Part shown: piece by piece, positions 3,031 through 38,208 of the stretch
Layout: each line of letters opens with the position of its first letter
How positions within the stretch are numbered: position 1 is the stretch's first letter
Position numbers and translations under genes: made by a program
The notes under the pieces: model-generated
Told to the model about the DNA's origin: nothing
Seen by the model: the letters and a program-made list of their open reading frames with translations, nothing else
The model's database searches: none
From: Macrostomum hystrix
Lineage: Eukaryota > Animalia > Platyhelminthes
Assembly (NCBI GenBank): GCA_950097015.1
Contig: CATNEN010000038.1
Span: forward strand, 31,310,001 to 31,374,000
Length of the DNA: 64,000 nt
Direction of reading: 5' to 3'

Positions 3031-3479
3031 TAGCGTATACAATGTAGTTGTATTGTGGGAATTTCCTGTTAAAATTTATAATTCAAAATACATAAGCGAA
3101 TTTGCAATAGAAGATAGATAAAAAATGAATTCAGTGTCTTTTTTAAAGTTGACACAATGGCACATCATATTTGTTGTATCCAAGAGCTAGAACTCAGAGC
3201 ACAAGCTAGTTATTATATTTGAAGACTTATAGAGACGAAATTATGAACATTAAGATAAAACTATGAGTGTGGGGCACATGCAACAATACAGCTAATTTAT
3301 TTTTTGCACTCATACACGCTACTACAAGTAGTTTTAATAATGCAAAAACTTTTAAGTCATTGTCTGGATAGATAAAGCATTAAAAATTTATAAACCTGGA
3401 TTGTACAGATAAAATTCTAAAAAATTATACAAACAAGATCAGATCCTAAAAGTCGATGCTTCTTATTGTGGGATTCAAA

Positions 3480-11000: not shown

Positions 11001-11376
11001 AACAGGTAGGTTTATTGTCTCGAAACAGGTAGGTTTATTGTCTCGAAACAGGTAGGTTTATTGTCTCGAAACAGGTAGGTTTATTGTCTCGTAACAGGTA
11101 GGTTTATTGTCTCGAAACAGGTAGGTTCATTGACTCGAAGCAAGTCGGTTGCTAAAAAGCTAAGATTACGAGTAGCTATAAAAAATTACTTTTTGTACTT
11201 TTCATAAAAGTACATTCAGTCATTTCCTCAGCCATATTGAAAACGCACACACACTTGCTGACCTGTCTATTAATCTGCTGTTTGACAAAGTCCATGCATT
11301 GAGCTGGTTGAAGGCCGGCTGCAAGCAAACACAAGAAGATTAAGCCAAGTGCCGCATTGAAACATGAGCATGTCAT
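5081..11376 (-). CDS. SLC10-family sodium:bile acid symporter with long extracellular N-terminus (exons 11376-11263, 8896-8288, 7590-7419, 5829-5081)
   Basis: Signal peptide plus SLC10 motifs MGCELD, QYVFMPL, GCAPGGGASN, GDISLSITMT, TISLETGIQN. All introns GT-AG and frame-consistent. Confidence 0.9.
5865..7330. repeat. 21/22-bp intronic minisatellite with 240/480-bp higher-order structure
   Basis: Unit TCAAACCTACTCAAGTATAGAT; identical 60-nt lines at 6121, 6361, 6601, 6841 and 7081. Confidence 0.95.
7626..8235 (-). mobile_element. Non-autonomous TIR element (MITE-like) in SLC10 intron 2
   Basis: TACCAAGGGGG...CCCCCTTGGTA inverted ends. Internal sequence is homologous to 18180-18455 and 20415-20620. 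Confidence 0.6.
8940..11135. repeat. Compound intronic minisatellite: 21-bp (AACAGGTAGGATTTAATGTTG) then 23-bp (GAAACAGGTAGGTTTATTGTCTC)
   Basis: Tandem copies; the unit switches near 9270-9310 and keeps the AACAGGTAGG core. Confidence 0.95.
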
Positions 11377-13319: not shown

Positions 13320-13650
13320 AAGCTACCCATAGCTAATAATGATGACACCTATAGCTAATATTTAATCACCTTCTTTTGCTACCCATAGCTAGCTGATAAT
13401 TAACACACCTTTAGACCTTTAGCTACGCGATAATTATCACACCTTTAGCTACCCATAGCTAGCTGATAATTAACACACCTTTAGCTACCCATAGCTAGCT
13501 GATAATTAACACACCTTTAGCTACCCATAGCTAGCTGATAATAACACATTTTTAGCTACCCATAGCTAGCTGATAATAACACATTTTTAGCTACCCATAG
13601 CTAGCTGATAATAACACATTTTTAGCTACCCATAGCTAGCTGATAATTAC
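13320..13650. repeat. ~35-bp minisatellite (TAGCTACCCATAGCTAGCTGATAATAACACATTTT)
   Basis: Tandem copies downstream of the EFTUD2 stop. Confidence 0.9.
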
Positions 13651-13790
13651 GACAATCTTTCGCAGCAAATAATTAACACAACGAAGAAGATAAGATAAGC
13701 TCCACACAAGCCAGTTAATTAGAGAGGAACAAAGACAATGCAAATTAGTTAAAAACAAAAGAATAAAAAGTACAGAACATTAGTAATAAT

Positions 13791-16700
13791 TCAAGCCAAA
13801 GCAGACAGCCCAACGTCCTGTTTGGCCAGCTCAAGAAGCATTGGATCGTCGAAGAATTTATTGATAGCCACATCCTCCGATAGGCCTTTGCGGCGTCGAG
13901 TTTTGATCATGAACTCGCGAGCCAGGTGTATAGCCGGCTGAGGCTCCAACGGCCGGATGACGATGCTCTTGTCCAATGGATCGCCTGGCACAATTTGCCA
14001 ATGATGAAACACGCTCAGGCAGAAAGCCTGGCCCTGTGTATGGGTTCTCAAATCGGTCTCGAAGCCGAACGAATCGATGGCTGGTAGGAAGGCTTTGACA
14101 GTGTAGAGCGGAATACCCGGCACGGGGGCGTCCTGGGTCACGTGACCGCGCCGACGAGCCAGAACGTTATAGACGGCCGGGACACAGTCGGCAGGCGTGA
14201 GGGCTTCAACGTACAAGTAGGGCTCCATGAGGCGAGGAGTAGCCATGAGGAAGGCGCTGTATGCCGCCCGGCGGGCCGTTGGAATCAGCTGACTGCCGCC
14301 GCGGTGGACTGGCTCGGCTGCGATCAATGCGTCTAGCATCTTCATCTTGACATTGCGAACTGGCTCCTCGCATAGTGGACCCTCCCTGGTGGCCCACTGG
14401 AAGCCTTGCACAATGGAGTCGCGAGCGGTGGCCAGGAGGTCTTTGTCCACCTCGGAGGGCAGGGTGTCGTCAACAAGGACGTTGGGACCGCTAGAGTCCG
14501 GACCGAAGGCCCAGATTGATCTGCGGGTGGCGGCGGAGAGGGCGTGGGTGGATTATGTCCTGCGAGTAGAGAGGATTATGTCTTGAGAGTAGAGGGGATT
14601 ATGTCCTGAGACTAGAGGGGATTATATCCTGATAGTAGGGTGGATTATGTCCTGAGAGTAGAGGGGATTATGTCCTGAGAGAAGAGGGGGTTATATCCTG
14701 ATAGTAGGGTGGATTAGAGGGTGGGTAGAGAAGAGTAGATAAAAGTTGCAAAGATTGGCGAGTTAAAGTTACAGGAAAAAGCCAGATTTAAATTGCAGAG
14801 AAGGGCAGACAAAGTCCATTGTGAAGAGATCGGATCTAGCTAATGTTAACCATACCTGGCAGCCAGCAGGTCCCAGTCGTATTTGTGCTGAAAGAATTCG
14901 GCCACTCGCTTACGCGGCCAGGCCAAGCTGACGCTCCCAGCTTCAATGTCCTCGGCGATGCCTTTCTCCAGCGGCTCGGCAATCAGCGTCAGTTTATTGC
15001 GCCGATTTGGCGTCTCGGCGAAGCACTTCACCGAGCTGGTCTCGACGACGGTCTCGGCGAATGCAACGCTGGGATCGGCCACCTTGACGTCGATGTCAGC
15101 GTATAGCTGGCGAAGGTCCAGCAGGGCGCAGTCCAGGTAGAGCTCGCCGGTGCCCATGATGACGTGCTCGCCTGACTCCTCGATGCGGCAGGCCAGCAGG
15201 GGGTAGGATTTGCTGAGCTTGCGAAGGCCGTCCAACATCTTGGGCAGTTCGGATGGCAGGCTGGGCTCAACGGCCACCTTCACCACGGAGGCGGTGCTGT
15301 ACTGCAGCGGCCGAAAGGTCAGGACTCGACGCGAGGCCGAGTCGGCGCTGGTGATGGTGGCAGTCTTGGCGATTGGCTCGTCAACCCCTTCGATGAGCAC
15401 CCAGTTACCGGCGGGGACTCTGCTGAGCTCCACTCTGTACTGCGCGTTGAGCAGCCAGAGGCGGCCAACACGGGCAGTGCGCGAATCCTCTTCGTCAGCC
15501 AGAGTGTACTGCTCGCCTAGGACGCGCACCTGCGAATGTTGGCGTAATGTTTTTCAATACATATCGGATAGATATTTATTAACGCGCTAAAGAATACTTA
15601 ATGGTTCAGGGCATGGAACACACTGAAGGATGGTTGGTTCAGGGCATAAAACACACTGAAGGATGGGTTGGTTCACTGCATAAAACACACTGAAGGATGG
15701 GTTGGTTCAGGGCATGGAACACACTGTAAGATGGATGGGTTCAGGAAATGGAACACACTGAAGGATGGTTGGTTCAGGGCATGAAACACACTGAAGGATG
15801 GGTTGGTTCAGGGCATAAAACACACTGAAGGATGGGTTGGTTCAGGGCATAAAACACACTGAAGGATGGGTTGGTTCAGGGCATAAAACACACTGAAGGA
15901 TGGGTTGGTTCAGGGCATGAAACACACTGAAGGATGGTTGGTTCAGGGCATGAAACACACTGAAGGATGGGTTGGTTTCGGCTATGAAACAAACTAAGCC
16001 AACCTGTTGTCCAGCGTGCAGAGTGCCGGAAATGACTCGGCCGAACACGTGGAAGCCGCTGGCATCAGGTGTCGGAAACAGTTTAGTCGCATGAATGACC
16101 AGCACGCCGGATGGGTCACAGCTGGCCATATCGGCGCAGACGCCGCCGTCCGATTCGCTGTTTTCGGCGCCCGAGTACCAACGGCGGACCCGGTCAGCCG
16201 CGGAGTCAACCGGGCTGGGACAATGTCGGACGGCTGAGTCAACCAGGCCGTCCCAGTTCGCAAAGAATCGGCGCATTACTAGGCGCAGCAGTGGTCGAAC
16301 ATTGAGCTTGAGCTCCGAGCGCGAGATTGGCACGTCCAGCTCATGGCACACCGCCTCGATGTTAGTCTCGACGTCGCCAACGAGGGTGCTGAAGATCTGA
16401 CAAAGTCGCGAGAGAGGTGCTTATTTTGAGAGGAAATCTTCGTGGGGATACAAAAATAGGTTTCTAAAGGTAATCCTGGGTTGAGGATTAAAGGCGAGGG
16501 GATTCTACGAGTAATCTCAAGTGTGGGATTTAAATTAGAAGTATGGGATTTTGATTAGAGGTATGGGATTTTAATCAGAGGTATGGGATTTTGATTAGAG
16601 GTATGGGATTTTGACTAGAGATATAGGATTTTAATCAGAGGTATGGGATTTTGATTAGAGATATAGGATTTTAATCAGAGGTATAGGATTTTGATTAGAG

Positions 16701-18799
16701 GTATGGGATTTTGATTAGAGGTATGGGATTTTGACTAGAGATATAGGATTTTAATCAGAGGTATGGGATTTTGATTAGAGATATAGGATTTTAATCAGAG
16801 GTATAGGATTTTGATTAGAGGTATGGGATTTTGATTAGAGATATAGGATTTTAATCAGAGGTATGGGATTTTGATTAGAGATATAGGATTTTAATCAGAG
16901 GTATGGGATTTTGATTAGAGGTATGGGATTTTAATTAGAGATATGGGATTTTGATTAGAGATATAGGATTTTAATTAGAGGTATGGGATTTTAATCAGAG
17001 GTATGGGATTTTGATTAGAGATACAGGATTTTAATTAGAGATATGGGATTTTAATTAGAGGTATGGGATTTTAATCAGAGGTATGGGATTTTGATTAGAG
17101 GTATGGGATTTTAATTAAAGCCAAGGATTAAGAAATCAACAAGGACTGACCTTATAGACAGGCTCCAGGCAGAACTGTACAAAAGTCCTCTGCTGAGCCT
17201 GCTGCTTGCCGCCGGCACCGGGTTCTCGACTAAACCGCCTAGTCTTGGCGTCGAAGTACACATCGCCCCACAGCCTGCTGGCAAACTGGGCAGCGTCCAT
17301 TCTAGGCGCGAATTTCTCCTTATACAATCTGGCGAACGAGGATAAACTGAAGCAGAAACGGAAAGCAGACGAGGCGAAGATGACAGAGCCGTCCAGAGGG
17401 GTCAGCGGCTTGGCGAGCTCGGGTGTTGGCGCGTGAGTATGGACCAGAGCGTTGACCTCGTCAATGAGGTGACGCAATCGAAAATAAGCATCAACAGGCG
17501 GCAGTTTGAGTTCGATAATGAGCCTGTCTATTTTATTGATGCACAGAATCAACGGCAGGCCGTGTTGCATAGCCTGCTGGATGGCTCGCTCCGTGCCCAT
17601 CATGGGACCCTCGGCGGCGCAGATCACTAGCAGGACGGCGTCGCACAGGCGGAACGCGGCCGCCTGCTCGTCGGCGAAGCACGGATGACCCGGAGTGTCC
17701 ATGAGATTCAACAGGTGCGACTTGCCCCGAGAATCTGGCAGTAGGAGACTGAGCGGACAGCACTTCACTGACAGGCCGCGCTCGCATTCGACCCGCAGGC
17801 TGTGCGTGAAGGACAACTCGGCGCGACCGTCGGCCACGTCGGAGGCGGTTGCGCGAACATCAGGATGAGTCAGCTCGATCAGGCAGTCCAGCAGGCAGGT
17901 CTTGCCGTGATGCAGGTGCCCGGCAACCGCTAGGCAACGCACCAGATTAGGACTGTCCATCAGGTCAGTGAGGAACTCCCAGCTGAATGTGGTCCTAGGC
18001 GTGTCTGAGCGTTCGCGAAAGTACACCCGCTTGGTGCGTATCGGAGCCACGATTGGCTCCGTCAGCGGCTGAGCGTCTTCCTCCTGGACCAAAGTCTCAA
18101 CATCGGGGCCGTACACCTGAGCGACAGGTGAAACAAATTCGCATCTTATTTTATTTGGAAAAAATCTATATTTCTATTGTTTAACAGAAGTGAAGAACCA
18201 CGAAGGGGAGATTTTCCCCAACCTGACAATTTTTTGCGCTGCACCCGAACGGAGCAACAGGAGGAAATAGGCCACTATCGACACCCTGACGCGAATTTCT
18301 TCAATTTCACTGTTTAAGCAGCTCAACCACAGGACACCATCGCCTAGTCTGTCAACCAATCAGTCACCACCAAACGCTATTAGCGTTCGGGCGCTGTCAA
18401 AAACATTTTTAGGATGTTGGGGCAAATCCCCCGCCTTGGTAGTCCTACAGTTAAGTATAATATTATTGATGTTAAGAGCGACTTTTTCAACAAGAATTTC
18501 TTGAGTAATATAATTACCTCAGCAGCCGATGGATAGTACTTTTTGTCCTCGTGCAGTACAACACGCATCTCGGAATCATCGTCACCTTTGCCCAAAGCCA
18601 GGCTGCCGGCACCGGTGGCTTCCGCAGCGGCATCATCATCGTCGCCTTCCTCTTCGTCGAAATCATCGTCTGCGTCGTCACCGCGACCGCCGCCCCGATG
18701 ACCGACGTCCTGGTCGTTGTCCTCGTTGTCTTCGTCGTCATCGGAAGCCAAGTCCGGCCCGATGTAGTTGCCGAACTCGTCGTAGAGGTCCTCGGTATC
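13791..18799 (-). CDS. EFTUD2: U5 snRNP 116 kDa GTPase Snu114 (exons 18799-18518, 18116-17151, 16396-16004, 15529-14856, 14520-13791; no ATG at the conserved start)
   Basis: [16 protein letters not shown]-terminus, [17 protein letters not shown], and C-terminal [33 protein letters not shown]. Introns are GT-AG and in frame. Confidence 0.97.
14545..14720. repeat. ~23-bp intronic minisatellite (GAGTAGAGGGGATTATGTCCTGA)
   Basis: Degenerate tandem copies. Confidence 0.8.
15602..15976. repeat. 33-34-bp intronic minisatellite (GGTTCAGGGCATAAAACACACTGAAGGATGGGTT)
   Basis: Tandem copies. Confidence 0.95.
16520..17118. repeat. 20-bp intronic minisatellite (GTATGGGATTTTGATTAGAG)
   Basis: Tandem copies. 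Confidence 0.95.
18180..18455 (+). mobile_element. Internally deleted copy of the MITE-like family in an EFTUD2 intron
   Basis: Shares CCTGACAATTTTTT...GCTGCACCCGAACGGAGCAAC and GCCTAGTCTGTCAACCAATCAGTCACCACC with the 7626-8235 element. TTAA occurs at both ends. Confidence 0.6.
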
Positions 18800-18849: not shown

Positions 18850-19645
18850 TATCTACCTTACACATAGTTTTAACATTCCCCTCAATCTACCTGTCACATA
18901 GTTAACATTCCCCTCAATCTACCTGTCACATGGTTAACATTCCCCTCAATCTACCTTACACATAGCTTTAACATTCCCCTCAATCTACCTGTCACATAGT
19001 TAACATTCCCCTCAATCTACCTGTCACATGGTTAACATTCCCCTCAATCTACCTGTCACATGGTTAACATTCCCCTCAATCTACCTGTCACATGGTTAAA
19101 CATTCCTCTCAATCTACCTGTCACATGGTTAAACATTCCTCTCAATCTACCTGTCACATGGTTAACATTCCTCTCAATCTACCTGTCACACCGTTAAACA
19201 TTCCCCTCAATCTACCTGTCACATGGGTAACATTCCCCTGAATCTACCTGTCACATGGTTAAACATTCCTCTCAATCTAACTGTCACATGGGTAACATTC
19301 CCCTGAATCTACCTGTCACATGGTTAAAATTCCTCTCAATCTACCAGTCACATAGTTAAACATTCCCCTCAATCTAGCTGTCACATGGTTAACATTTCTC
19401 TCAATCTACCTGTCCCATGGTTAAACATTCCTCTCAATCTACCTGTCACATAGTTAACATTCCTCTTAATCTACCTGTCACATGGTTAACATTCCCCTCA
19501 ATCTACCTGTCACATGGTTAACATTCCCCTGAATCTAACTGTTACATGGTTAACATTCCTCTCAATCTACCTGTCACATGGTTAAACATTCCTCTCAATC
19601 TACCTGTCACATAGTTAATATTCCTTACAATCTACCTGTTACAAG
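18850..19645. repeat. 31-32-bp minisatellite (TTAACATTCCCCTCAATCTACCTGTCACATGG)
   Basis: Tandem copies immediately upstream of the first EFTUD2 acceptor. Confidence 0.95.
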
Positions 19646-23187: not shown

Positions 23188-24871
23188 TTCGACTCTGAAG
23201 AATTGGATTGAGATAGTTTTACAAATTGTTAAGGATCAGTTAACACAACTTTAAAGGTAACTCTGAATAAAAAGTTAAGGTTAAAAATATTAAATTTATT
23301 GAGATTAAGAATTCTAAACTACAAAGTTACAGTTAGAGCTCCAAACAATATTGTTGCCAAAACTACCATAAAATACTTTTGGTTTACTAATACTTGATAA
23401 CTACCTGAAAACTAAACAAAAACCAAGAAGAAAACTAGACTAGCTGAACCAATGTGATAAAAAGCACAATGTTATTACATATTTTTAAGGGAAACTAAGT
23501 AACTGTAACTATCACTAAGTGTCACAAATATTTATCTCTAGTCTCTAGAAACTTTTACTAATCTCAGTGTCTAAAAATCTATGATTTAAAATAAACTTAC
23601 ACCTTTTTATTATTATTTTTATAAGATTTTACACATTTTCTGGCTAAGAGTTTGCTTGATCCCAAGCCTATAAAAATTAAATAAGACCCTATTTTGCTGT
23701 TTTTTGGAAAGAACAAATATAGATTAAGCTAATAAAGATTATTACTAAGCCTAAACTAGTTAGGCTTAGTAGGGTAATGTATCATCAACCGAACAGTGGA
23801 TCTTCAAAACCGAACAAGAATTTTGACTTCTTCCTTGGTCTCGTGCAAGACAGAAACAAGCTATCGTGTTTCACAGAACAACTAATTTGAAAGTTGAAGA
23901 AATTATCTACAAGCTGAGGCATGATGTGCAATGAAGCATTAAGAGGAAAGAAAGATATTGATGTTTCAGTAGAAATTTTTATCGCAAAAGCATACTTTTT
24001 AACAACATTTTTTCAGTACATGTACTTTAGACAAAGATTGTATGTGGTTGCTTGCCAATTAAATGACCATAAATGCAGTTATTTATAGAGCATGAAAAAT
24101 GCTTTCAAATTACATAATTCATGATAGTTCACTCCTTAAAATAAGATTAAACCACTCACTTAAAGTGGCACCACTGAACAGGCTGAAGGTCTAATTGGCC
24201 CTACAAAGGAGTTGTTAGCTTGGTATGGCTCATGGCACTTTTTTGCCAAAATGTTATAGTTTCCAGCACATGTTAGGTATGTAATTTATGTTCTTATAGG
24301 GAATCATAAATGCTAGCTAAGTAAGAATTGTATGGTTGTACAGTTTAAGACTGAATAAAGTAGGGCCTAGGTTTACTGGTTGAGGAGATCGGCCATGAGC
24401 CTCTGCTGCCAGGGGTCTGGGTCCCCCCAGTGGGGAACATTGTAATTCATTTTACTCACTAACTCACAGTTTCTTTGTTGCAACAAGACCCATTGATGAA
24501 ATTATTAGGCCTAATGCAATTTATGCGATCAATAGGCCCTGTACCCCTAAAATACAAATAGGATTTAGGTATAACTTGCACACAAATGCATTTTGTGTAA
24601 AATGCTTTCCTTTTCCATGCATTATATCATAGGCCCCCACATGTAGCGAAATATGATAACATAGAAAAAGCATGGATCTGCATGTGTTAAATTAGCTCGG
24701 ACTGTGTAAATTGAAAAGTATGATCTATATATTTTAACATATAACACCAAAGCTGATTAAAAATCACAAGAATTGCAGATGGCCCTTCCTTGTCAACAAC
24801 AATTACACAACCTAATAATTATTTACTCAAAGGATGCTAATTAAATAAAAAATTTCGCTTTTACAGAAACT

Positions 24872-25327
24872 TGTGACGTTGTCTCTCTAATTTAATGTAA
24901 TTTTAATATGCTATTTCTAATTAAGTGCATTATTTTCGTTAGCTATATTTGTTAGGGATATTTCTTCGGTTTTCCATATATATTTATAATGGTTTTGTTT
25001 TAGTGTACTACATAGTCGTAGTTCGTATTCAAATGTGCTAACTAGGCCTTTCCAGTGAAGGCTCCCAACCCTGCCCCCGGGCTTGTTCTACGACTGAGTG
25101 CTGGTTGTTATTTTGTCAGTGGCTAATCTGAACTGTAGCCGTAGCTGTATTTCAAGTGAATCCATTGAGTAGCTCTGTAACCCATCTAAGATATAGCCAG
25201 CATTCGCCGTAAAGACGATTTCTTAATTCGAAGGCCCAATTTACTGCATGAGAGTGCTTTCCGCTACGAAGGTTTTGTAACGATCGATAATTTACCTTGC
25301 TATTAAAATAAACCGAACTTCGTCATA
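24872..25327 (+). repeat. 5' LTR (456 bp, TGTGACG...CGTCATA)
   Basis: Direct repeat of 33130-33584. By eye it differs by one substitution and one 1-bp indel. AATAAA lies ~15 nt before the end. Confidence 0.95.
25207..25250 (+). other. Spliced-leader-like 44-mer inside the 5' LTR
   Basis: CCGTAAAGACGATTTCTTAATTCGAAGGCCCAATTTACTGCATG aligns without gaps (37/44) to the Macrostomum SL exon as I recall it. Ends in the flatworm-conserved ATG. Confidence 0.75.
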
Positions 25328-25333
25328 TAAATT

Positions 25334-25347
25334 TGGAGGACCCACCG
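25334..25347 (+). promoter_or_regulatory. Primer binding site, tRNA-Gln-like
   Basis: TGGAGGACCCACCG, 6 nt after the LTR; 13/14 complementary to a metazoan tRNA-Gln 3' end (...CGGUGGGACCUCCA). Confidence 0.7.
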
Positions 25348-26396
25348 TCAATGACAATTCGAACCCGGTCATCGACCATCGTCATTCGTCAAAAAGCTAG
25401 CTCATAGGCCTAGGCCTACTCATCATTAATTAGATCTCAAGTCTACTAAAGTCCAACAGTGATTCAGCACTATCAGTTCACAGCACAGCCTACCTACTAC
25501 ACAGACGATCGAGAAAGTAAACAACAACCAACTTTATCAGCTTAAGCGTATCGGCAGTGTGTCTTCGCAGAGTGAGTCAGACGCTAAGCCTAAAGGAGGG
25601 TCAGACAACCAGCCAACCTCTGTGCTCTGCGCCTGTGTCCAATCACGTGACCACTAAACACACCTGGTTAGGAGTATCAACTCTTAATTGCAAGCGCAAC
25701 AACCCCAAAGCTTTAGCCCGCCGAGCGCCACCCCTCTCGTCTGTTGAACTGCGCCTAGCCATTGCAATCGATTGCCTAAGGGTTCTCTCGGCCTGCGCCC
25801 CGCTTGATTTTTGTGGACTAGGCGAGCCAGGCTAGCACTGCAAAGCATTTCCGCCGGGTCGTCACTTACAACATCAGCAATAGCAATCAATTAGCCAAAC
25901 GCCGGCAGCAGTGGCCCTACGCCAGCTGTTCACGACAACAGCTACTACGGCAGCCGGTGCCAGTCTGCAGTTGCAACAGCGGCCAACAACAATCGGTTAG
26001 CATCAGAGCATCGCCTCGCGGGTTGAACGGGCCTGCGACTGAAGGGCACCTGCCATCTGCGAACAAGCCAAGCCAAGCTGAACCGAACCGATCCGAGCCG
26101 AGCGGTGTGCAGCAAGCCTGGTTGAGCTGGACCTTGCCGATTGCCGTGGCGAACTGAGCAGTGTGCCGAAGACAACGGCGGCCGAGATTCGGAACTGGTG
26201 GTTGCAGCTAAGGCTGAGTTCAATTATTTATTATTATTATTATATTAGGATCTATTGTGGCAGTAACTTTAGACTTAGGACCACTATTAGTACTAGACTT
26301 GTTGCTCAATCATTTGTAAACTGCCACATTCTTTCTTGTGTAGGCCTAGCTCGTTCTTCGCTCCTCTTTTTCTAGTTGTGTGTCTGAGTTCTAGTC

Positions 26397-29300
26397 ATGT
26401 CAGGCGTAAATTCAGATACCGACCAAGTCAACCAGTCAGGGGCAGCATTGTCAGGCCAGGGACCAGAGGAGAACATCGGCCATGGGCCTGGGACAGCAGG
26501 AGGTGCTGAGGTGGAGATGGAGGGAGGTGAGCAGCCGGAGCGCGAGACCTCCTTAGGTGACCTCGCCAGAACCCTAGCCCAAATCCGTGACAACACCAGC
26601 ACCAGTTCTAGAATACCGAAATCGAGCCCTCGGCTCAGACCCCCAGTGGCCTACACACCCAAAACCAAATTTGATATCTGGTGGACGCAATTCCGCCTGT
26701 TTCTTGAAGCCAATGAGATCATGCCTGAGCATCGGACAGCAGTGTTGCTTTCATCCCTGTCACCCGAGTGCCAAGAGTTCTTTTACAACTATCGTCTGCA
26801 CGAGAAAAGCTTTGATGAAGCAGTAAAGAGTCTAAGAAGCCGGTATGGCGAGCCAACCCACGTAGATAAATACTATATAGAACTGACCTCAGCCCAACAG
26901 CTGTCATCGGAGAGTATCCAGGAGTATTTTGACCGCCTCATAGGCCTAGCAAATGCCGCGGACATGAGCCGCTCTGAGTACGAGCCCCTAGTAAGGACGC
27001 GATTTTGCTATGGCTTGGCTGACAAAACTATTGCCGAAAAACTTATCAATATGCTGCATGAAGCACCCAGGGCTTCACTGGAGAGACTCCTAGCTAGGGC
27101 TCGAGACACAGATCAAACTAGGCAGCTGCTCAAACTGACTGAGCAACCCAAGGTTAGAAGTGTTGAAGCAGACGAGATCCGAGCCCTGAAGGCGAGAATA
27201 GCAGAACTGGAGAAGAAACAGTCAGGGCCACAACAAAGCACGCAGAAACCTACTAATAGCAACAGTGGTGGCCATAGGCACAACTTTCAATCTCAGAAGT
27301 CCCCCCAGGACTACTCTAGTCATGCCCGAATGAGCGGCGCCCTACCTAAATGCTTCAGGTGTAGTGAGACTGGCCACCTCATTGCCGAATGCCCCTATCC
27401 TAGAGAGCCAGGTACTGGTGCGCCACCCTCGAAGTTCAGGACCCCGCAACCCTTTAGGGAGCCAAAAAGTTTTAAGCCAAATGCGAGTTCGAGGCCACCC
27501 AGAGAGAAGGGAGTAGTGACTCATTGGAAAGACTCTTACGGGTTCATTCAGTCCTCTCAGATAGGCGACTCTGTTTTTGCGCACCTGTCTCAGTTGGTCC
27601 AGCCCCTGTTGGACCTGGCCTTAAGCCACCAGCTAGTGGGTACCAGCGTGACATTCAGCCGTGTCGCCGACGCTGGCAAGTCTAGAGACAAAGCTATTAG
27701 TGTGACAGCTACGTCGACGGACCCTAAGTGTGCTGAAGTGTCTTCAGACCTACCCAGTTACAAGGCAGGATTCTATGTTCAGGTTGAGATTGGCGAGACC
27801 AAGACTGTTGCCCTTCTAGATCCCGGTGCCAATGCCTCCCTGATTTGCCCGAAGATGCGAGACAAGCTCCTAGAAGCTGATCCAATCAATAATGTCTTCA
27901 CCCCTGCTCGCACCCAGCGCACAGCTACTGGTTTCAATGGGGCTAGTTCGCAAATACTAGGCAAGCTCCAGTGCGAAGTGAGTTTAGACAAATTAAAACA
28001 GCAGCACATATTCTTAGTGATTGAAGGCCAGTTATCCGAGATCCTGCTAGGGTTGGACTTCTGTGGTAATTTCCAAATCGTCATGGACATGGCCTGTGAC
28101 CGTGTGACCTGCGCTGGAGAGTACGTCCCAATTTTTCGCGGCACCAATGCGATCTGTAGCGTGAATCGCGTTGTGGCCGCTTGCGATACAGTCCTGCCAC
28201 CCCGCTCAGAAACGCTGATCCCAGCTAGGGCTATAGACGCTGAGAGCAGTTCCTATGGCGTTGTTAGTGCCAGATTATTCGACCCCGACCCGTCTATCAT
28301 AGTCGCCAATTCATTGGACCAGGTCAGCCCCACTAGTCACGTGTTAGTCAGAGTCCTAAACAGCGGCGAAGATGAGGTGAGGATTTCCAAGGGCGAGGAG
28401 GTAGCGTCTTTCAAGAAGCTAGGAGCTGATGAGAGCGTAGTGAGTACCAGACTTAGTGAGAGTGATTTCAGCATTGACAACGAGAGCGCGCTAAATGATA
28501 AGCTGTGCAAGCTGCCCTACCCAGATCCAGGGACAGCCAAGTGGCTCTTAGACCAATTTCACCTGCAGGAGCGTAACCTGACCCAGGAGCAGCTGGATAC
28601 GACAGTAAAAATGCTGAACTATTTTCTTAGCCAGATCTCGAAATCGGAAGCAGACATCGGTAGAACCCCTCTGCATGAACTGTCAATCGAGTTAAAGGAC
28701 CCGAAGTGTCGCCCGATTTCTCAGCCATCGAGGCGAACAACCCCAGCGCAAAAGGAATTTCTGGATAAGTACATCGCCCAGCTCCTAAACCAGGGAGTTG
28801 TTGAAGAGTGCGACTCCGAGTGGGCCTCACCCATTGTGCTTGTGAAAAAGAAGGACGGTACATGGCGCCTTTGCGTAGATTACCGTGCGCTCAACAAGCA
28901 CATAAAGCCGTGCTCTTTCCCGCTGCCCTTAATAGACGAATCTTTCGATAGCTTAGCGGGATCCGCCGTCTTTAGTAGTTTAGATCTGACGAGCGCCTAC
29001 TGGCAGGTAGGGATCCGGGAAGCTGACCGAGACCTCACCGCGTTCTCATGTCCCCAGGGCACCTTTCGTTGGACCGTAGTCCCCTATGGGATCAAGACCG
29101 CGCCTGCAAGTTTCGCCAGGCTGATGCACCGCGTGTTTCGCCCTCTTTTGCTCAGGGTTAGCCTAATTTACCTAGACGATGTCATCATCAAGGCCAAAAA
29201 CAACGACGAGATGATTTCCCATCTGGCGCTAGTTTTCTGGCAGCTTAGAAAAGCGAATCTAAAAATCAGACCCTCGAAGTGTGAGCTCTTCAAGGACAAA

Positions 29301-32300
29301 CTGAAGTTTCTAGGCTTCATAGTTTCCTCAAAAGGGATAGAGGCCGATCCGACCAAAACTGAGGCCGTTCAACAGTGGTGTACACCTAGGGATAAGAAGC
29401 AGCTTCTCTCCTTCCTGGGATTTGCCAATTATTACAGGAAGTTTGTCCCTAGATTCTCCATCATAGCCACGCCTCTGTATGCCCTAGCCAAGAGCTCTGA
29501 GAAATTTGTTTGGCGCCAAGTGCACGAGGCCGCTTTCCAAGAACTAAAGTCCAACCTATGTAATCCACCAGTGCTGAGATACCCAGACCTGAGTCCCACA
29601 GCGGGCACCTTTGTTCTAGACTGCGACAGCTCCCTTGACGGTGTGGGAGCAGTCCTTTCCCAACTAGATGGGAACGACGTAGAACAAGTGATTGCCTACG
29701 CTTCTAAAAAATTCACCAGCGCGCAGCGAAACTATTGCGCCACCATGAGGGAGCTCCTAGGTCTGGTTCTCATGTTAGAGCAGTTCAGGACTTACTTACT
29801 TGACCGGGAGTTCCTAGTGCGAACAGATGCGATTGCTCTGAAGTGGTTACACTCGAAAAAACACGCAACCGGAATGCTCGCCCAATGGTTGGTCACACTA
29901 GAGCCTTACACCTTCAAGGTAGACCAGACTCCACTGGAGAGAATAGCGGAGTACGATTTTAAAATCTCCCACAGAGCTGGGGAATCCCACGTTAATGCGG
30001 ATGTTTTGAGTCGCAACCCGAAGTTCAGAGCAGACCATTTCGACTGCCCAACCTGTAGCCTGATCCCAGAATTTATATCCAAGTTCCAGAAGGAAAAAAA
30101 ACCAGCGCCATCGGATGTTAGTGAGGTCAAAATCAGCCGTATGTGTGTCAGTACTCAGACTCTAGTCACAACTGGCTGTCAGACCACCGAGCTGATATTC
30201 GACTCAGCGATTCAGCTTCAAAATGAGCCGGTTGCAGACTTAGCAGTTCAGACTGACCTCGAACGGGTCCCTGAGATCCCTGAGCCTAATCAAGCTAGCA
30301 AGCGCCCAGTCATCCCAACCTCGTCTGCAGGTACTCAGGTAGACACCAAACCTAAACCGGAAACACCGCCATCAGCCGCAGCACATGCTGTGCAAGTCCA
30401 GGTCTCGGATAGGTCCACGATCGCAGACGAAGTTCTAGACCCAGGCAGTGATAACGAAGATGAGGCGGGGGCTGAACAGAGAGAAAGAGAATGGGCCCGT
30501 AGTGCTCAGGATTCGAACATTGATCTTGTTTTCCTGAGAGATGCTGTAGCTGGAAAGGTAGAGAGGTTGTCTAAGCAGGAGCTCCAAGGTTGCAGTCGTG
30601 AGCTCAGAGCCTTATGGGCTATGTTTGACGAACTGTCTGTTGAGGACGATCTGCTGCTTCGGAACAAGCCAGCCAAGAAAAGGAAGCCCGCTGCCAAGCT
30701 TACGGTCATCCCTGAGTCTGCGAATGTAGATGAACTAGTGACCAACTACCACAGAGCCGTTAATCACTCGGGGATAAAAAAGACTTTAGGAGTGGTAAAA
30801 AAGAACTTTCAAATCTCGAACCTAGAAACTATAGTCAAGGGAGTCGTAGCCAGCTGTGAGATTTGCGCTAGGACTAAGAAATGCAAGCGAAAGAACAAAG
30901 CTCCGATGCAGCCAACTCTAGCCGGGTACCCGAACCAGGTCGTGCATGTAGACCATTGCGGACCGTTCCCTGAACAGGAAGGCTACCGGTATCTGCTTGT
31001 AATGATTGACAGATTCACCGGATTTGTGGAAATTGTCCCTGTGAAAGACGTAACTGCCGAGACAACCGCGGCAGCAATCCTGACAGAGTGGATTGTTCGC
31101 TACGGTGCTATGGAGCAAATGGTCTCGGACAATGGCACAGCATTCATAAATAACATTGTTGCAGAGCTGACCCGCTTGCTAGAGATCGATACCGTTAGAA
31201 TCACTGCTCGCCGCCCCCAGGCCAACGGGAAGGTGGAACGCAACATCCAGACTATTAAGAGTCAAATTCGAGCAGTCTGTGCTGAGAGGCATGTGACTTG
31301 GCCCTTTGCCGCTAGGTGTGTAGGAATGAGCATCCGCTCTCTAGAATCCGAATCGACAGGCATGACACCTGCTAAGCTTTTTCTGGGCCGTGAATTTCAA
31401 ATGCCCCTAGACCTGATGTACAACCCACCAAGGCAAGATTGCTATGACCCGGACAGTTACGCGCACCGACTCCACCGAACTCTTGTCGAAACCTCTGCCA
31501 CCGCACGGGCTGTTAGGAAGAAGGCACAGGCTAGGCAGAAGCGTTACTATGACAGATCGGTTTATAAGTCAAGCTACGAGGTTGGAGAGCTAGTGTGGGT
31601 TCTAAACCCCGACCACAAGGGCCTCGACCCAGCTGTTTGGTTTGGTCCGTACAAGGTTATTCAGAAGGTCTCTGAGAGAAACTATAGGTTGATTCCAGAG
31701 TTTTCGCGAGAGAATCCGTTCAGAGTACCGAATCCTAGTCACAACATCTATAACGTAGACCGGATGAAGAGGTGCATCCGCCAGCCAAACTATCAGGATG
31801 TGGTTGATAGATTTAGATTAGACACTGTAGCAAGGATGCCAAGCTCATCTAAGCTAGGACAAGGAGATCTGGATTCCAGCTCCAGACAGCTGAGCTTTAG
31901 TTCTGACTGGATTTCCGAACCAGACTTGGTCACTGTCCCACCTGCGGGTCAGAAGAGCCGCTCTTTTCCGAGAAGCCAATCGTCATCAATCACACAGCCA
32001 GTCGAACAGCCAATCACACAGCCAGTTCAACAGCCAATCACACAGCCAGTTCAACAGCCAATCACACAGCCAGTTCAACAGCCAATCAAAACACTGCCAG
32101 TGGAACAGCCAAATGCTCAACCAGTCACTAAACCAGAGTCACCACCCGAGGTGCAACCTGAACAAGCACAACAAGCAGTAAACATTGTCAATAATGAACA
32201 GGTGCCAGACATCGGTGCTGAAGTTGAAGTCACAGCAGAGCCAAATCCAGATCCTCAGGCAACAGCAATACCAAATCTGCCACCAGAACCACAACCACAA

Positions 32301-32438
32301 ATAGAACACGAACACGATCAGACAGACCAGGCACAGAGACCAGCTTGCACTGTTACGAGGTCCGGCCGGCAAGTAAGGCCGCCGGTCAGATTCCTTTCCA
32401 CGCTGGTCAATCTGTTCAGGAGAGGTAGCGAGAGCTAA
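26397..32438 (+). CDS. Gag-Pol polyprotein (capsid, CCHC knuckle, cold-shock domain, protease, dUTPase-like spacer, RT, RNase H, integrase)
   Basis: CFRCSETGHLIAEC; LLDPGA; WASPIVLVKKKDG, LDLTSAYWQ, YLDD; DCDSS...RELL; HHCC plus VDHCGP/SDNG/VER; GPY motif. Confidence 0.97.
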   Translation: MSGVNSDTDQVNQSGAALSGQGPEENIGHGPGTAGGAEVEMEGGEQPERETSLGDLARTLAQIRDNTSTSSRIPKSSPRLRPPVAYTPKTKFDIWWTQFRLFLEANEIMPEHRTAVLLSSLSPECQEFFYNYRLHEKSFDEAVKSLRSRYGEPTHVDKYYIELTSAQQLSSESIQEYFDRLIGLANAADMSRSEYEPLVRTRFCYGLADKTIAEKLINMLHEAPRASLERLLARARDTDQTRQLLKLTEQPKVRSVEADEIRALKARIAELEKKQSGPQQSTQKPTNSNSGGHRHNFQSQKSPQDYSSHARMSGALPKCFRCSETGHLIAECPYPREPGTGAPPSKFRTPQPFREPKSFKPNASSRPPREKGVVTHWKDSYGFIQSSQIGDSVFAHLSQLVQPLLDLALSHQLVGTSVTFSRVADAGKSRDKAISVTATSTDPKCAEVSSDLPSYKAGFYVQVEIGETKTVALLDPGANASLICPKMRDKLLEADPINNVFTPARTQRTATGFNGASSQILGKLQCEVSLDKLKQQHIFLVIEGQLSEILLGLDFCGNFQIVMDMACDRVTCAGEYVPIFRGTNAICSVNRVVAACDTVLPPRSETLIPARAIDAESSSYGVVSARLFDPDPSIIVANSLDQVSPTSHVLVRVLNSGEDEVRISKGEEVASFKKLGADESVVSTRLSESDFSIDNESALNDKLCKLPYPDPGTAKWLLDQFHLQERNLTQEQLDTTVKMLNYFLSQISKSEADIGRTPLHELSIELKDPKCRPISQPSRRTTPAQKEFLDKYIAQLLNQGVVEECDSEWASPIVLVKKKDGTWRLCVDYRALNKHIKPCSFPLPLIDESFDSLAGSAVFSSLDLTSAYWQVGIREADRDLTAFSCPQGTFRWTVVPYGIKTAPASFARLMHRVFRPLLLRVSLIYLDDVIIKAKNNDEMISHLALVFWQLRKANLKIRPSKCELFKDKLKFLGFIVSSKGIEADPTKTEAVQQWCTPRDKKQLLSFLGFANYYRKFVPRFSIIATPLYALAKSSEKFVWRQVHEAAFQELKSNLCNPPVLRYPDLSPTAGTFVLDCDSSLDGVGAVLSQLDGNDVEQVIAYASKKFTSAQRNYCATMRELLGLVLMLEQFRTYLLDREFLVRTDAIALKWLHSKKHATGMLAQWLVTLEPYTFKVDQTPLERIAEYDFKISHRAGESHVNADVLSRNPKFRADHFDCPTCSLIPEFISKFQKEKKPAPSDVSEVKISRMCVSTQTLVTTGCQTTELIFDSAIQLQNEPVADLAVQTDLERVPEIPEPNQASKRPVIPTSSAGTQVDTKPKPETPPSAAAHAVQVQVSDRSTIADEVLDPGSDNEDEAGAEQREREWARSAQDSNIDLVFLRDAVAGKVERLSKQELQGCSRELRALWAMFDELSVEDDLLLRNKPAKKRKPAAKLTVIPESANVDELVTNYHRAVNHSGIKKTLGVVKKNFQISNLETIVKGVVASCEICARTKKCKRKNKAPMQPTLAGYPNQVVHVDHCGPFPEQEGYRYLLVMIDRFTGFVEIVPVKDVTAETTAAAILTEWIVRYGAMEQMVSDNGTAFINNIVAELTRLLEIDTVRITARRPQANGKVERNIQTIKSQIRAVCAERHVTWPFAARCVGMSIRSLESESTGMTPAKLFLGREFQMPLDLMYNPPRQDCYDPDSYAHRLHRTLVETSATARAVRKKAQARQKRYYDRSVYKSSYEVGELVWVLNPDHKGLDPAVWFGPYKVIQKVSERNYRLIPEFSRENPFRVPNPSHNIYNVDRMKRCIRQPNYQDVVDRFRLDTVARMPSSSKLGQGDLDSSSRQLSFSSDWISEPDLVTVPPAGQKSRSFPRSQSSSITQPVEQPITQPVQQPITQPVQQPITQPVQQPIKTLPVEQPNAQPVTKPESPPEVQPEQAQQAVNIVNNEQVPDIGAEVEVTAEPNPDPQATAIPNLPPEPQPQIEHEHDQTDQAQRPACTVTRSGRQVRPPVRFLSTLVNLFRRGSES

Positions 32439-33115: not shown

Positions 33116-33129
33116 GAGAGGGAGGCGAG
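33116..33129 (+). promoter_or_regulatory. Polypurine tract
   Basis: GAGAGGGAGGCGAG directly before the 3' LTR. Confidence 0.85.
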
Positions 33130-33584
33130 TGTGACGTTGTCTCTCTAATTTAATGTAATTTTAATATGCTATTTCTAATTAAGTGCATTATTTTCGTTAG
33201 CTATATTTGTTAGGGATATTTCTTCGGTTTTCCATATATATTTATAATGGTTTTGTTTTAGTGTACTACATAGTCGTAGTTCGTATTCAAATGTGCTAAT
33301 TAGGCCTTTCCAGGAAGGCTCCCAACCCTGCCCCCGGGCTTGTTCTACGACTGAGTGCTGGTTGTTATTTTGTCAGTGGCTAATCTGAACTGTAGCCGTA
33401 GCTGTATTTCAAGTGAATCCATTGAGTAGCTCTGTAACCCATCTAAGATATAGCCAGCATTCGCCGTAAAGACGATTTCTTAATTCGAAGGCCCAATTTA
33501 CTGCATGAGAGTGCTTTCCGCTACGAAGGTTTTGTAACGATCGATAATTTACCTTGCTATTAAAATAAACCGAACTTCGTCATA
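33130..33584 (+). repeat. 3' LTR (455 bp; SL-like 44-mer at 33464-33507)
   Basis: Direct repeat of the 5' LTR, followed by TSD AACT. Confidence 0.95.
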
Positions 33585-34740
33585 AACTTATGGCTTGCAA
33601 AAATGTATTTAGAATTGTGACAAGATTAAAACAAATCGAAACGCAAATGCAAGCACCTTAAAGTAGTTTAAAAGGGTTCACAATATATCCCTACAACATA
33701 ATTTATAAATTTTATAAATTTAGATCGTAGGATGTGTCCAAAAAAAACTTTTTGAATCGTTGGGCTTTCATGCCGCTTCAAAAATATAAAGATACTAATG
33801 TAAGGTTAATCATTTATTAGTCCACGCACCACTTTAATGTGTTTTCTGATATTATACTATTTCGAATTAGTTGCAGCAATAATGATTCGGCACGCACACT
33901 TGACTGCACTTGGGTCAATGTCTTGACTTAGCTGTACATCTTGTTTGTAAGCCAAGGTGGCAGAGGTGCCAACTTTTTAAAGTGTAACTTTGAGAGTTTT
34001 AATCGGATAACACTAATTTTTTATGAACGTATTTATGAGTGTATACAAGGTACTGATAAATTTAATTATACATTGACTAGCCTTACTTTCAAGAATCCAT
34101 TGTACCTGAATTTGTTAAGATTTTTATTTGCAACGTTTAAAACGAAAATACCAATAAATGATTTTTTGGTAACCAGTAACATTTACACAGAGTATTCATT
34201 AAATTAAAATTATAAATTGCTGAACAACACTGCTGCATTGAAAAATTCTCATCGAAATTGTAAATGAAAAAATAGAATGCAAAAAACAACCGCGATTTCA
34301 TCGGGATTCGAAAGGTAGTAAAAAACTGTTTTTGTGTGATCAAGCATCTTTCCTTTATATTTTAACATTCGAATTGCAGCTCATTGCTTTAATCCAATTA
34401 ATAGTTTTAACCTAAAGATTGCTTCCTAACCAAGTTAGATTAGGCAGAAAAGAGATGGAAACTACTACACGACATAAAACACCAGTTTGTAAATTTTGAA
34501 TCAGTTGTTTAAAACAATGACCAGTCGAGTTTTTAAGTCTTCTAATTTAAGCCCTCCAAGGTAAATTGCCCTAGGTTGGCGCAAAATCCAAAAAATAACG
34601 AAAACAACAAACCAACGATCCTACAAATGCTGCTAGTAAACAGATCCTAATGAACAAGAACATATGCTACACATGAACCCGATTGTTCTTCTCTTTCAAT
34701 TTCTAAATTTTAAAAGATTAGAAAAAAAAATAAACGCGAC

Positions 34741-37700
34741 TCATTTCCACTTGCTGCCGTCAGTGTCTGGCAGGGCTTCAACAATGACACCGTAGCCGAT
34801 GGTGCCGCCGCCGCTGCGAATAGTGAACCGTTGGCCCGGTTCGATCACCATCCGGCGGTGCAGGTCGATGATAGCCGGGGCGTCCTCGCCTGGCATCAGC
34901 ATCTCCCGATTGCCCTCCATGCCTAGCAGGCAGGGACAGTCGAATGTCTTGCTGTACACCATGATCTGCGTGCCGGGCATTAGGGGCTTGTCGCGACCGC
35001 CCTCTTCTTTGGACATCAGGTAGATCTTCACCTTGGCGTGATTGTGCTGATTCACAGATTTCGGCGCCGAGATCACCATGCCGCGGCGAATGTCGTCACG
35101 TTTGACTCCGCGAAGCAGAACGCCAACCTGCAGGATGGGGTTTAGTGTGTGTACCACACCCAACTTGAGTAAGCCTCTAACGGGTGAAAATACAATTGCA
35201 CTTGCCTTTATATGTATAGCTAGGCATATATAAATTCAGAGTCAATCTAGAATCCCGGAACTACAATCTAGAATGCTGGAACTACAATCTAGAATGCTGG
35301 AACTACAATCTAGAATTCTGGAAGTACAATCTAGAATGCTGGAACTACAATCTAGAATGCTGGAACTACAATCTAGAATGCTAGAACTACAATTTAGAAT
35401 GCTGGAACTACAATCTAGAATGCTAGAACTACAATCTAGAATGCTGGAACTACAATCTAGAATGCTAGAACTACAATCTAGAATGCTAGAACTACAATCT
35501 AGAATGCTGGAACTACAATCTAGAATGCTAGAACTACAATCTAGAATGCTGGAACTACAATCTAGAATGCTAGAACTACAATCTAGAATGCTAGAACTAC
35601 AATCTAGAATGCTGGAACTACAATCTAGAATGCTAGAACTACAATCTAGAATGCTGGAACTACAATCTAGAATGCTGGAACTACAATCTAGAATGCTAGA
35701 ACTACAATTTAGAATGCTGGAACTACAATCTAGAATGCTGGAACTACAATCTAGAATGCTAGAACTACAATCTAGAATGCTGGAACTACAATCTAGAATG
35801 CTAGAACTACAATTTAGAATGCTGGAACTACAATCTAGAATGCTAGAACTACAATCTAGAATGCTGGAACTACAATCTAGAATGCTAGAACTACAATTTA
35901 GAATGCTGGAACTACAATCTAGAATGCTAGAACTACAATCTAGAATGCTGGAACTACAATTTATAATCATGTACCTAGTCGTACAGTATTAAGAACCATG
36001 AAATGGCAACCTATTGCAGAAGGGTTAAGGATGTATTAATCTAGTCTAAATAGTTCACTTCCAGAGTCATACCTGATCGCCGGGTTCGGCTTTATCCAGT
36101 AGCTGCTTAAACATCTCCACGCCGGTGACAGTAGACTTAACGAAACGATTGTAGCCAATAATTTCAACGGTATCCTGCGGCTTGCAGATACCGCGCTCCA
36201 CACGACCCGTGGCAACGCAACCGCGACCGGTGATTTGAAGCACCTGTTTGGTTGCAGGTAAAGGATCAGAAAAAACACTATTAAAATAGTTTATTAAGCT
36301 CAGTTTATAATGAGCTCGTTTATTCGAGACTACCTACTCTACCTTCAAAACTACTTACTCTACCTTCAAAACTACTTACTCTACTTTCAAACCTACATAC
36401 TCTATCTTCAAAACTACCAACACTACCCTAAAACCTACCTTACTCTACCTTCAAACCTACCTATTCTACCTTTAAACCTACCTATTCTACCTTTAAACCT
36501 ACCTACTCTACCTTCAAACCTACCTACTCTACCTTCAAACCTACCTACTCTACCTTTAAACCTACCTACTGTACCTTCGAACCTACCCACTCTACATTCG
36601 AACCTACCTACTCTACCTCCAAACCTACCTACTCTACCTTCAAACCTACCTATTCTACCTTTAAACCTACCTACTCTACATTCAAACCTACCTACTGTAC
36701 CTTTAAACCTACCCACTCTACCTTCGAACCTACCTACTCTACCCCCAAACCTACCTACTCTACCTCCAAACCTACCTACTCTACCTTCAATATCAAGTAC
36801 AGTCGCTATATTTTAAGAAACAATAAGCAAAGCAAATCGCACCTGTTCAATAGGCAAATAGAATGGCTTGTCCAGATCTCTAGGCGGCAGTGGGACTGCG
36901 TCGATCTTTTCCAACAGTTCCCGAATCTTTGACTCGCCAATTTCGGCTTCGCGACCCTCCAGGGCGCAGAGGGCGGAACCGGCCACCACCGGTATGTTGT
37001 CACCGTCGAAGCCGTAGGATTTCAAAACTTCGCGAATTTCTAGCTCGACTAATTCTAGCATCTCTTTGTCGGCCGCGTCTGCTTTGTTAATGAATACAAC
37101 CAGATTCTGAATGCCAATCTGCTTGGCTAGGAGCAGATGCTCTTTGGTCTGAGGCATTGTGCCGTCGGTGGCTGCTACTACTAGGACGGCGGCCTCCATC
37201 TGGTTGGAACCTAGTAGTTTGGTTGAGTTCATTAGGAGAGTTGGTTGAGTAGATTGTCAGGGTAGGTTGAGTAGATTGTCAGGGTAGGTTGAGTAGATTG
37301 TCAGCGTAGGTTGAGTACATTACTTTATCAAGGTAGATTGAGTATATAATAAAATAGATTGAGTATATTAAAAGGTGGATTGAGTAGATTATCAGGGTGG
37401 GCTTAGTAGATTTTCAGGGTGGGTTGAGAAGATTGTCAGGGTCGGTTGAGTAGATTGTCAGGATGGGTTGAGTAGATTGTCAGGGTGGGTTGAGTAGATT
37501 GTCAGGATGGGTTGAGTAGATTGTCAGGGTGGGTTGAGTAGATTTTCAGGGTAGGCTGAGAAGTTTATTAGGGTGGGTTGAGTAGATTGTCAGGGTGGGT
37601 TGAGTAGATTATCAGGGTGGGTTGAGTAGATTATAAATGCAGGTTGAGTACTTTATCTGAATAGGATGAATAGATAATTAGGTTTATTTAAGCAGATAAC

Positions 37701-38208
37701 TAGGGTCGGTTAAGTAGATTTTTAGGGTAGGTTAAATAGATGGCAATAATACTCGTATAGTTCAACTTTATTAATTGGGCAGGTTAAAAGCATAAGATAA
37801 CAAGTTTGCTCAGAATAAGAATAATAAATATTAGGCATTCATACCAGTGATCATATTTTTTATGTAATCAGCATGTCCGGGACAGTCCACGTGAGCATAG
37901 TGCCGGTTCTTTGTGCTATAATCCACCACAGCGGCGTTAATAGTAATGCCTCTCTTTTTCTCTTCGGGCGCCGAGTCAATCTGATCGTAGGCTTTGAAAG
38001 TGGCCGTCTTGTCGGTTGATAGGACTTTAGTAATGGCGGCAGTCAGTGTAGTTTTTCCGTGATCCACGTGTCCAATAGTGCCAATGTTCATATGGGGCTT
38101 GTCACGTTTAAATACCTTCTTAGCAGCTGGCGGAGCAGCTAAGCGGCAAATTGCCGACTGGTGCAGACAGCGAATGCCCAACTGGGCCAATACACTTAGC
38201 TGACGCAT
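34741..38208 (-). CDS. TUFM: Mitochondrial elongation factor Tu (exons 38208-37845, 37210-36843, 36243-36073, 35127-34741)
   Basis: Transit peptide, [51 protein letters not shown]. Introns are GT-AG. Confidence 0.96.
35243..35960. repeat. 21-bp intronic minisatellite (CTGGAACTACAATCTAGAATG)
   Basis: Tandem copies; explains the spurious repetitive ORFs here. Confidence 0.95.
36329..36790. repeat. 21-bp intronic minisatellite (AAACCTACCTACTCTACCTTC)
   Basis: Tandem copies. Confidence 0.95.
37240..37742. repeat. ~22-bp intronic minisatellite (GGGTTGAGTAGATTGTCAGGGT)
   Basis: Degenerate tandem copies. Confidence 0.9.

Follow-up and report, generated by a model that had tools for sequence, protein, structure and literature searches.

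Copies of the host spliced leader exon in the LTRs of a Macrostomum hystrix Ty3/gypsy retrotransposon: a probable relic of trans-splicing

Architecture of the element and its spliced leader block

The window, by which we mean the whole stretch of 64,000 nucleotides of Macrostomum hystrix DNA that was analyzed, contains an element flanked by a target-site duplication and bounded by two long terminal repeats (LTRs; Table 1). The LTR pair is 99.6-99.8% identical (99.56% in one alignment), the differences amounting to one substitution and one 1-nt indel. A Pfam search with the polyprotein revealed the domain order PR-RT-RH-IN, including RT_RNaseH and Integrase_H2C2, which is the order of the Ty3/gypsy group. 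Taken together, the LTRs, the target-site duplication and the domain order indicate that the element is a Ty3/gypsy LTR retrotransposon. Homologues of the polyprotein in M. lignano (P0001-P0003) are 63-64% identical to it. The candidate primer-binding site is retained beside the 5' LTR in subfamilies A and B; a search for a tRNA gene end matching it found none. U5 is very short in the young subfamily of the window's family and about 30 nt longer in older copies.

Table 1. Positions of the features discussed. Plain numbers are positions in the window.
Feature	Position	Strand	Remarks
Target-site duplication AACT, 5' copy	24868-24871	+	Adjoins 5' LTR; 3' copy at 33585-33588, right after 3' LTR
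5' LTR, 456 nt	24872-25327	+	First letters TGTGACG, last CGTCATA
TATA-like GATATAG	25190-25196	+	Putative, from reading of the letters; 10-16 nt 5' of SL block
Diverged copy of host 45-nt SL exon (G plus 44-mer), in 5' LTR	25206-25250	+	38/45; 44-mer at 25207-25250
Upstream ORF, 10 codons	25248-25280	+	MRVLSATKVL, then stop; starts at ATG of SL copy
AATAAA poly(A) signal	25307-25312	+	Overlapped by ATTAAA at 25302-25307; 15 nt from LTR end
Candidate primer-binding site TGGAGGACCCACCGTC	25334-25349	+	TGG-led; starts 6 nt 3' of LTR
gag-pol ORF, 2013 aa, uninterrupted	26397-32438	+	zf-CCHC, weak cold-shock domain, aspartyl protease, RT, RNase H, integrase
Polypurine tract GAGAGGGAGGCGAG	33116-33129	+	Immediately 5' of 3' LTR
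3' LTR	33130-33584	+	Direct repeat of 24872-25327
Second SL-exon copy, in 3' LTR	33463-33507	+	Exact repeat of the 44-mer, at 33464-33507
Tandem-repeat arrays	2508-3033, 3469-4993, 5864-7328, 8935-11150, 13352-13654, 15602-15998, 16512-17129, 18851-19643, 35096-36004, 36272-36860, 37199-37770, 61048-61635		
SL gene units	G000 C15, C17, C42		U1 example at L012:1843-2005, minus strand
SL-exon insertion in window-family LTR	L102:438-1680 (G000 C35:56937-)		14-nt duplication AAAGACGRTCTCTT flanks insert
BEL/Pao SL-copy insert	L104 (C24:364700-367700)	-	
Further places of insertion series	L103 (C3:8380842); L105 (C1:13634191)		

Just past the Gag zinc knuckle (window positions 27507-27710, residues 371-438), the polyprotein shows a weak match to the cold-shock domain family PF00313, with an E-value of 1.4e-4, under the Pfam cut-off. 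The same family is among the precomputed hits of the M. lignano homologue P0003, and the match may correspond to a real cold-shock domain in the nucleocapsid region of this Gypsy element. The window is also unusually rich in short-tandem-repeat arrays, located on both sides of the element; those that were measured have a period of 21-22 nt.

Both LTRs contain a 44-mer that occurs exactly twice in the window, both times on the plus strand (0 in 100 shuffles). The initial annotation, made from the letters of the window, had reported this 44-mer in both LTRs and had compared it to the M. lignano spliced leader (SL). Both copies indeed lie inside the direct repeats, and the SL used for that comparison proved to be, letter for letter, the exon of the genome's own SL RNA genes, against which the ungapped match of 37/44 was reproduced. 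Further details of the original reading were also confirmed: AATAAA lies 56 nt past the block, where a distance of about 60 nt had been given, the LTR letters following the block are AGAGTG and no GT donor, and the LTR holds no Sm-like site.

When the preceding G is included, the block matches the SL exon at 38 of 45 positions, compared with 24-27 of 45 for the best match in shuffled 64-kb windows. Likewise, the local alignment score of the LTR block against the SL exon is 53, the shuffle maximum being 17. Chance similarity is ruled out by these shuffle controls together with that of the exact 44-mer. The LTR block is a genuine, if diverged, copy of the SL exon of the host, situated near the expected start of R, and the initial proposal that the element captured this exon is thereby upheld, for the exon only. 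The short upstream ORF that starts with the block's ATG sits 1.15 kb 5' of the polyprotein start.

Host SL RNA genes and the extent of the similarity

SL RNA genes were identified by searching the 220-Mb assembly for the leader 3' end followed by a GT donor. About 19 copies reside in 11.6-kb tandem units on three small contigs, and one further copy is dispersed; in every SL gene the exon is followed by GTAAGA. The last 35 nt of the exon are those of the published M. lignano SL (PMC8629364). SL trans-splicing affects 30% of genes in M. lignano and 10-20% in M. hystrix and M. cliftonense (PMC10468722, PMC8629364). In 11 of 14 distinct contexts a G precedes the block, as it does in the SL gene, which makes 45 nt the best estimate of the exon length. 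For the SL RNA gene, the predicted fold (-34.7 kcal/mol, z -3.8) comprises three hairpins and a single-stranded, U-rich stretch. In each 11.6-kb unit, the SL gene is preceded at about 290 nt, on the same strand, by a gene for U1 snRNA (Rfam RF00003, 151.7 bits). Two of the units have other sequence in place of the usual one 5' of the SL gene, starting at -115 in L014 and at -11 in L018.

The homology between LTR and SL gene spans the exon only, from the G before CCGT to the exon-final ATG at the splice junction. On the 3' side, alignment of the 200 nt following the block with the SL intron and beyond gave scores at shuffle level. The LTR stretch equivalent to the whole SL RNA has a folding energy of -14 kcal/mol (z +1.0) and folds no better than shuffles, and the three-hairpin fold, the Sm-like site and the GT donor of the SL RNA, all looked for in the LTR, are absent. 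A working SL RNA gene inside the LTR, which would need donor, Sm site and fold, was therefore ruled out. In short, true SL RNA genes and the LTR have the exon in common, whereas the GTAAGA donor, the hairpins, the U-rich stretch and the U1-bearing unit are found in the genes only.

On the 5' side, the initial annotation had suggested that an SL/snRNA promoter was captured in U3 along with the exon. Capture of an SL RNA gene and its promoter at the DNA level, which would let U3 drive snRNA-type transcription, is scarcely credible. The sole point in its favor is that the block lies close to where transcription is expected to start, while similarity limited to the exon excludes a capture of gene and promoter. 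Indeed, alignment of U3 (335 nt) with the 600 nt upstream of the SL gene scored 18 against a shuffle mean of 19.4, i.e., no similarity, and the last 60 nt of U3 matched the last 60 nt upstream of the gene no better than shuffles did, so that the suggested promoter capture was not borne out. Intron, donor and Sm site are missing as well, and each of the families found to carry the block (see below) has its own, unrelated upstream sequence. Such exon-only homology is the hallmark of DNA derived from a spliced RNA.

In Sm-class RNAs, assembly of the Sm core is a prerequisite for hypermethylation of the cap. As the LTR offers neither an Sm-like site nor the hairpins, SL-type cap hypermethylation is not expected, and the initially proposed SL-type (TMG) capping of the element RNA finds no support in an LTR that also lacks the donor.

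In one run search, three small public runs of unrecorded type were found to hold about 80% of the element's words. The Logan contigs of these runs span the element in full at 95-100% identity; U3 is included and is entered from the polypurine-tract side, the letters GAGAGGGAGGCGAG forming the loose end of the contigs running into U3. None of these contigs extends over the 470 nt of flank. Coverage of the whole element without its flanks suggests that the contigs represent transcripts. The contig breaks fall at variant positions and not at RNA ends, and the contigs are accordingly not used to place the start site. The TATA-like motif, at the usual spacing, would put the start about 10-20 nt inside the block. 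A 2024 run with another, coded organism name (X1) holds short contigs that are 98-99.6% identical to the element interior (window positions 26085-27952); this run could stem from the same species under another label, or from a very close relative with the family.

Other carriers of the block and its history within the family

A genome search with the true 44-mer, allowing up to 3 mismatches, revealed at least 60 places, of which about 20 are SL genes. The remaining places fall into at least six repeat families unrelated to the window's element, which means that the block is not peculiar to the latter. Each carrier family has its own flanks on both sides and shows SL similarity with the same two borders, and some families hold perfect 44/44 copies. 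Many of the places are paired, at a distance of 3.6-8.4 kb. One carrier is a second Ty3/gypsy family, with a pol 33% identical to that of the window's element, LTRs of 690 nt, the block at LTR position 335 and an ATTAAA 41 nt past it; the distance from block to poly(A) signal is 40-60 nt in both Gypsy families. Another carrier, encoding a Pao peptidase, belongs to BEL/Pao and has the block about 50 nt from the LTR end, beside a TGGCGCCCGAAC primer-binding site. Among the LTRs of the carriers examined (window's, second Gypsy and BEL/Pao), the block is the sole shared sequence. With carriers so distant and LTRs sharing nothing else, several independent captures would be more economical than a single ancient one. 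About 27 integrase-defined families were located in the genome.

The second SL-bearing Ty3/gypsy element contains, between pol and the 3' LTR, a third frame of 316 aa (L097:7193-8140; G000 C39:15247200-). This frame, in the position of an env-like gene, encodes a clear DnaJ domain (PF00226, E 9e-17).

Copackaged RNAs recombine in retroelements and many SL-bearing families coexist in the genome, so an element could in principle have acquired the block by template-switch recombination with another SL-bearing element instead of through trans-splicing of its own RNA. We regard such an origin as very improbable, however, since the flanks are family-specific up to both exon borders and two switches, each exactly at a border, would be needed.

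The history of the block within the window's family was followed with a whole-LTR search, unbiased toward the block, that yielded more than 40 LTRs; 42 were aligned, and the tree comprises 38. Older, more divergent copies are nearer the true SL (e.g., 40/45 in L045) than is the youngest clade, which includes the window copy (38/45). In subfamily B (at least 15 LTRs) the match is down to 34/45 with indels, and a 35-nt deletion takes the final ATG and the next 32 nt. Judging by its LTR pairs, which are 99.3-100% identical, subfamily B has moved as recently as the window's subfamily. On the tree of 38 LTRs, the block accounts for 30 parsimony steps, or 0.68 per site, versus 0.81 per site in the rest of the LTR, and it ranks 154th of 403 among 44-nt windows (154 with equal or fewer steps). 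The question raised by the initial annotation, whether the block is better conserved than the flanking LTR sequence, is thus answered in the negative. This neutrality test applies to the window's family only; the second-Gypsy and BEL/Pao samples were chosen by SL similarity and were for this reason not used as evidence. In the window's family, the block is slowly drifting away from the true leader.

These results bear on the idea, likewise put forward initially, that the block is a mimic maintained by selection. Leaving any promoter aside, an SL-like start might let the element RNA pass for a trans-spliced host mRNA and gain in translation, export, stability or escape from silencing, so that lineages with the block would spread. 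A function of this kind would fit several findings: at least six families, from two superfamilies, have the block, and its place is invariably in the 3' portion of the LTR, just ahead of the poly(A) signal; some copies in carrier families are very young and uninterrupted; and the contigs spanning the element but not its flanks suggest expression. Nevertheless, we consider it doubtful. The block in the window's family is no better kept than its flanks and the older copies are the ones closer to the SL, while subfamily B, recently active as its near-identical LTR pairs attest, has lost the ATG and has indels. Selective maintenance is therefore unsupported. Moreover, neither Sm site nor SL-RNA fold is present, a TMG cap being unexpected as a consequence, and the ATG of the block opens merely a 10-codon upstream ORF.

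Terminal redundancy could be another benefit: an SL-trans-spliced element RNA would pair with the SL copy of the 3' LTR, complete the first strand transfer in this way and refresh the copy. The location of the block at the expected start of R and the perfect 44/44 copies in some families are compatible with this scenario, which nonetheless appears quite unlikely. The block ends in TG at its 3' border and offers no AG acceptor, so the same junction cannot be made again by splicing, and the changes within the window's family accumulate along the copy tree in the manner of simple decay, none of them restoring a canonical letter.

Several SL copies have themselves been the target of insertions. 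A non-coding insert of 1.1 kb (L102:456-1557) interrupts one LTR of the window's family right after SL nt 18 (..TCTCTT), and a related insert occupies the same SL nucleotide, with the same duplication AAAGACGRTCTCTT, in the SL block of a BEL/Pao LTR (L104). The 5' end of the insert also forms left junctions elsewhere in the genome; at one of these (L105), the upstream flank resembles that of a true SL gene. The left duplicate of the insert keeps to the canonical SL, including sites at which the host LTR deviates from it, as would happen if the insert RNA had begun with SL nt 1-18. The insertions appear to be specific for the SL exon and in this resemble SLACS, CZAR and NeSL, which are SL-gene-specific non-LTR elements. 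A search for an RT-bearing partner of the 1.1-kb insert found none, and an Rfam search of the insert for a 5' ribozyme returned nothing credible. In addition, one LTR of the window's family (L041/L101; G000 C25:4205964, minus strand) is cut right after SL-like nt 18, beyond which lies host sequence that codes, on that same strand, for Integrator subunit 4. This copy was not counted as a site-specific insertion, because the sequence past the break consists of host genes and not of a retroelement; its end at nt 18 could be coincidental, or it could be due to a deletion or to breakage at the target site of the inserts.

Origin of the block and comparison with known systems

We propose, at a probability of roughly 0.7, that the block is a passive fossil of SL trans-splicing of an ancestral element RNA that was subsequently reverse transcribed. 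An ancestral Ty3/gypsy RNA would have been trans-spliced near its 5' end, the 45-nt SL of the host replacing the element's own 5' end. Minus-strand strong-stop DNA would then have run to the 5' end of this RNA, finishing with the complement of the leader, and an irregular first strand transfer that tolerated or bridged the non-homologous tail would have joined the leader to U3. Plus-strand synthesis would have copied the new U3-SL-R-U5 arrangement into both LTRs, the block being inherited as LTR sequence ever since. Today, the block is probably the start of R or a stretch across the start site, and would be transcribed from the element promoter and receive an ordinary cap. Four points of this model are inferred: that the RNA intermediate was trans-spliced, that strand transfer was aberrant, where transcription starts, and that the block is neutral today. 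The fossil model accounts for the exact exon borders, the place of the block before the poly(A) signal, its recurrence in unrelated families and its decay.

Bringing a 45-nt non-homologous tail into an LTR by strand transfer is an unusual step, and yet it has apparently been taken several times. Repeated capture could consequently point to selection for carriers. It is conceivable, if improbable, that selection acts on the full SL exon at the start of R as a module, which Macrostomum LTR retrotransposons acquire repeatedly, the decay seen here being a secondary loss. Were this true, the module might supply the genomic RNA with a host-like 5' leader, or keep strand transfer possible for genomic RNA that has been trans-spliced. 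The existence of several unrelated carriers means that capture is either merely frequent or favored, a question that is absent from the Macrostomum LTR literature searched; a 2025 study of M. lignano LTR retrotransposons (PMC12801592) never mentions trans-splicing.

If the block is such a fossil, then in an animal that trans-splices, the genomic RNA of an LTR retrotransposon can acquire the host leader without losing the ability to go through a full replication cycle. The scar, at the presumed U3/R border, is datable and would mark the 5' end of the ancestral RNA, thereby providing a pointer, from sequence only, to the start of R in unannotated flatworm LTRs. On the practical side, LTR-borne SL copies are a source of false positives in searches for SL RNA genes and of false trans-splice signals in RNA-seq.

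That LTR-element RNA can be SL trans-spliced is illustrated by the Ty3/gypsy element Cer1 of C. elegans, in which SL1 is trans-spliced onto a 2.4-kb spliced mRNA and not onto the 8-kb genomic RNA (PMC3315495). The likeness lies in an LTR-element RNA receiving the host spliced leader. The initial annotation had cited nematode Cer elements as a precedent for an SL1 copy inside an LTR; in this form the precedent was not confirmed, as PMC3315495 describes no such copy in the Cer1 LTR.

The SL copy is real and most likely a relic of trans-splicing, and leader fragments in flatworm retroelements are already on record. In a survey of parasitic flatworms, 597 candidate SL loci were discarded since they lay within LTR or LINE elements and comprised partial leader sequences only (Calvelo et al. 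2025, PMC12582326), contrary to the initial statement that no flatworm case was known. The same origin, reverse transcription of a trans-spliced RNA, is proposed there for the leader-bearing loci. Like the window block, these loci have SL sequence without other SL-RNA features and are embedded in LTR or LINE elements. In contrast to the partial leaders of the parasites, the block described here is a complete exon that occupies the presumed U3/R border in each LTR, and its host is a free-living Macrostomum. Furthermore, the subject takes up a single passage in that survey, whereas a family history and several independent carriers are documented here.

A DNA-encoded SL derived from reverse-transcribed trans-spliced RNA is also seen in the relic SLs of dinoflagellates, to go by the citation of Slamovits and Keeling (2008) in PMC12582326. 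As cited there, the dinoflagellate relics are retrogenes of host mRNAs, whereas in the present case the RNA was that of an LTR retrotransposon and the relic has been doubled into both LTRs. Finally, the Cassandra TRIM elements (bioRxiv 10.1101/2023.07.14.548913) likewise hold the sequence of a host small-RNA gene, 5S rDNA, in their LTRs. Cassandra carries the internal promoter of 5S and tracks the mutations of the host 5S, whereas the LTR of the window's element has taken up no promoter and its copy drifts away from the SL.
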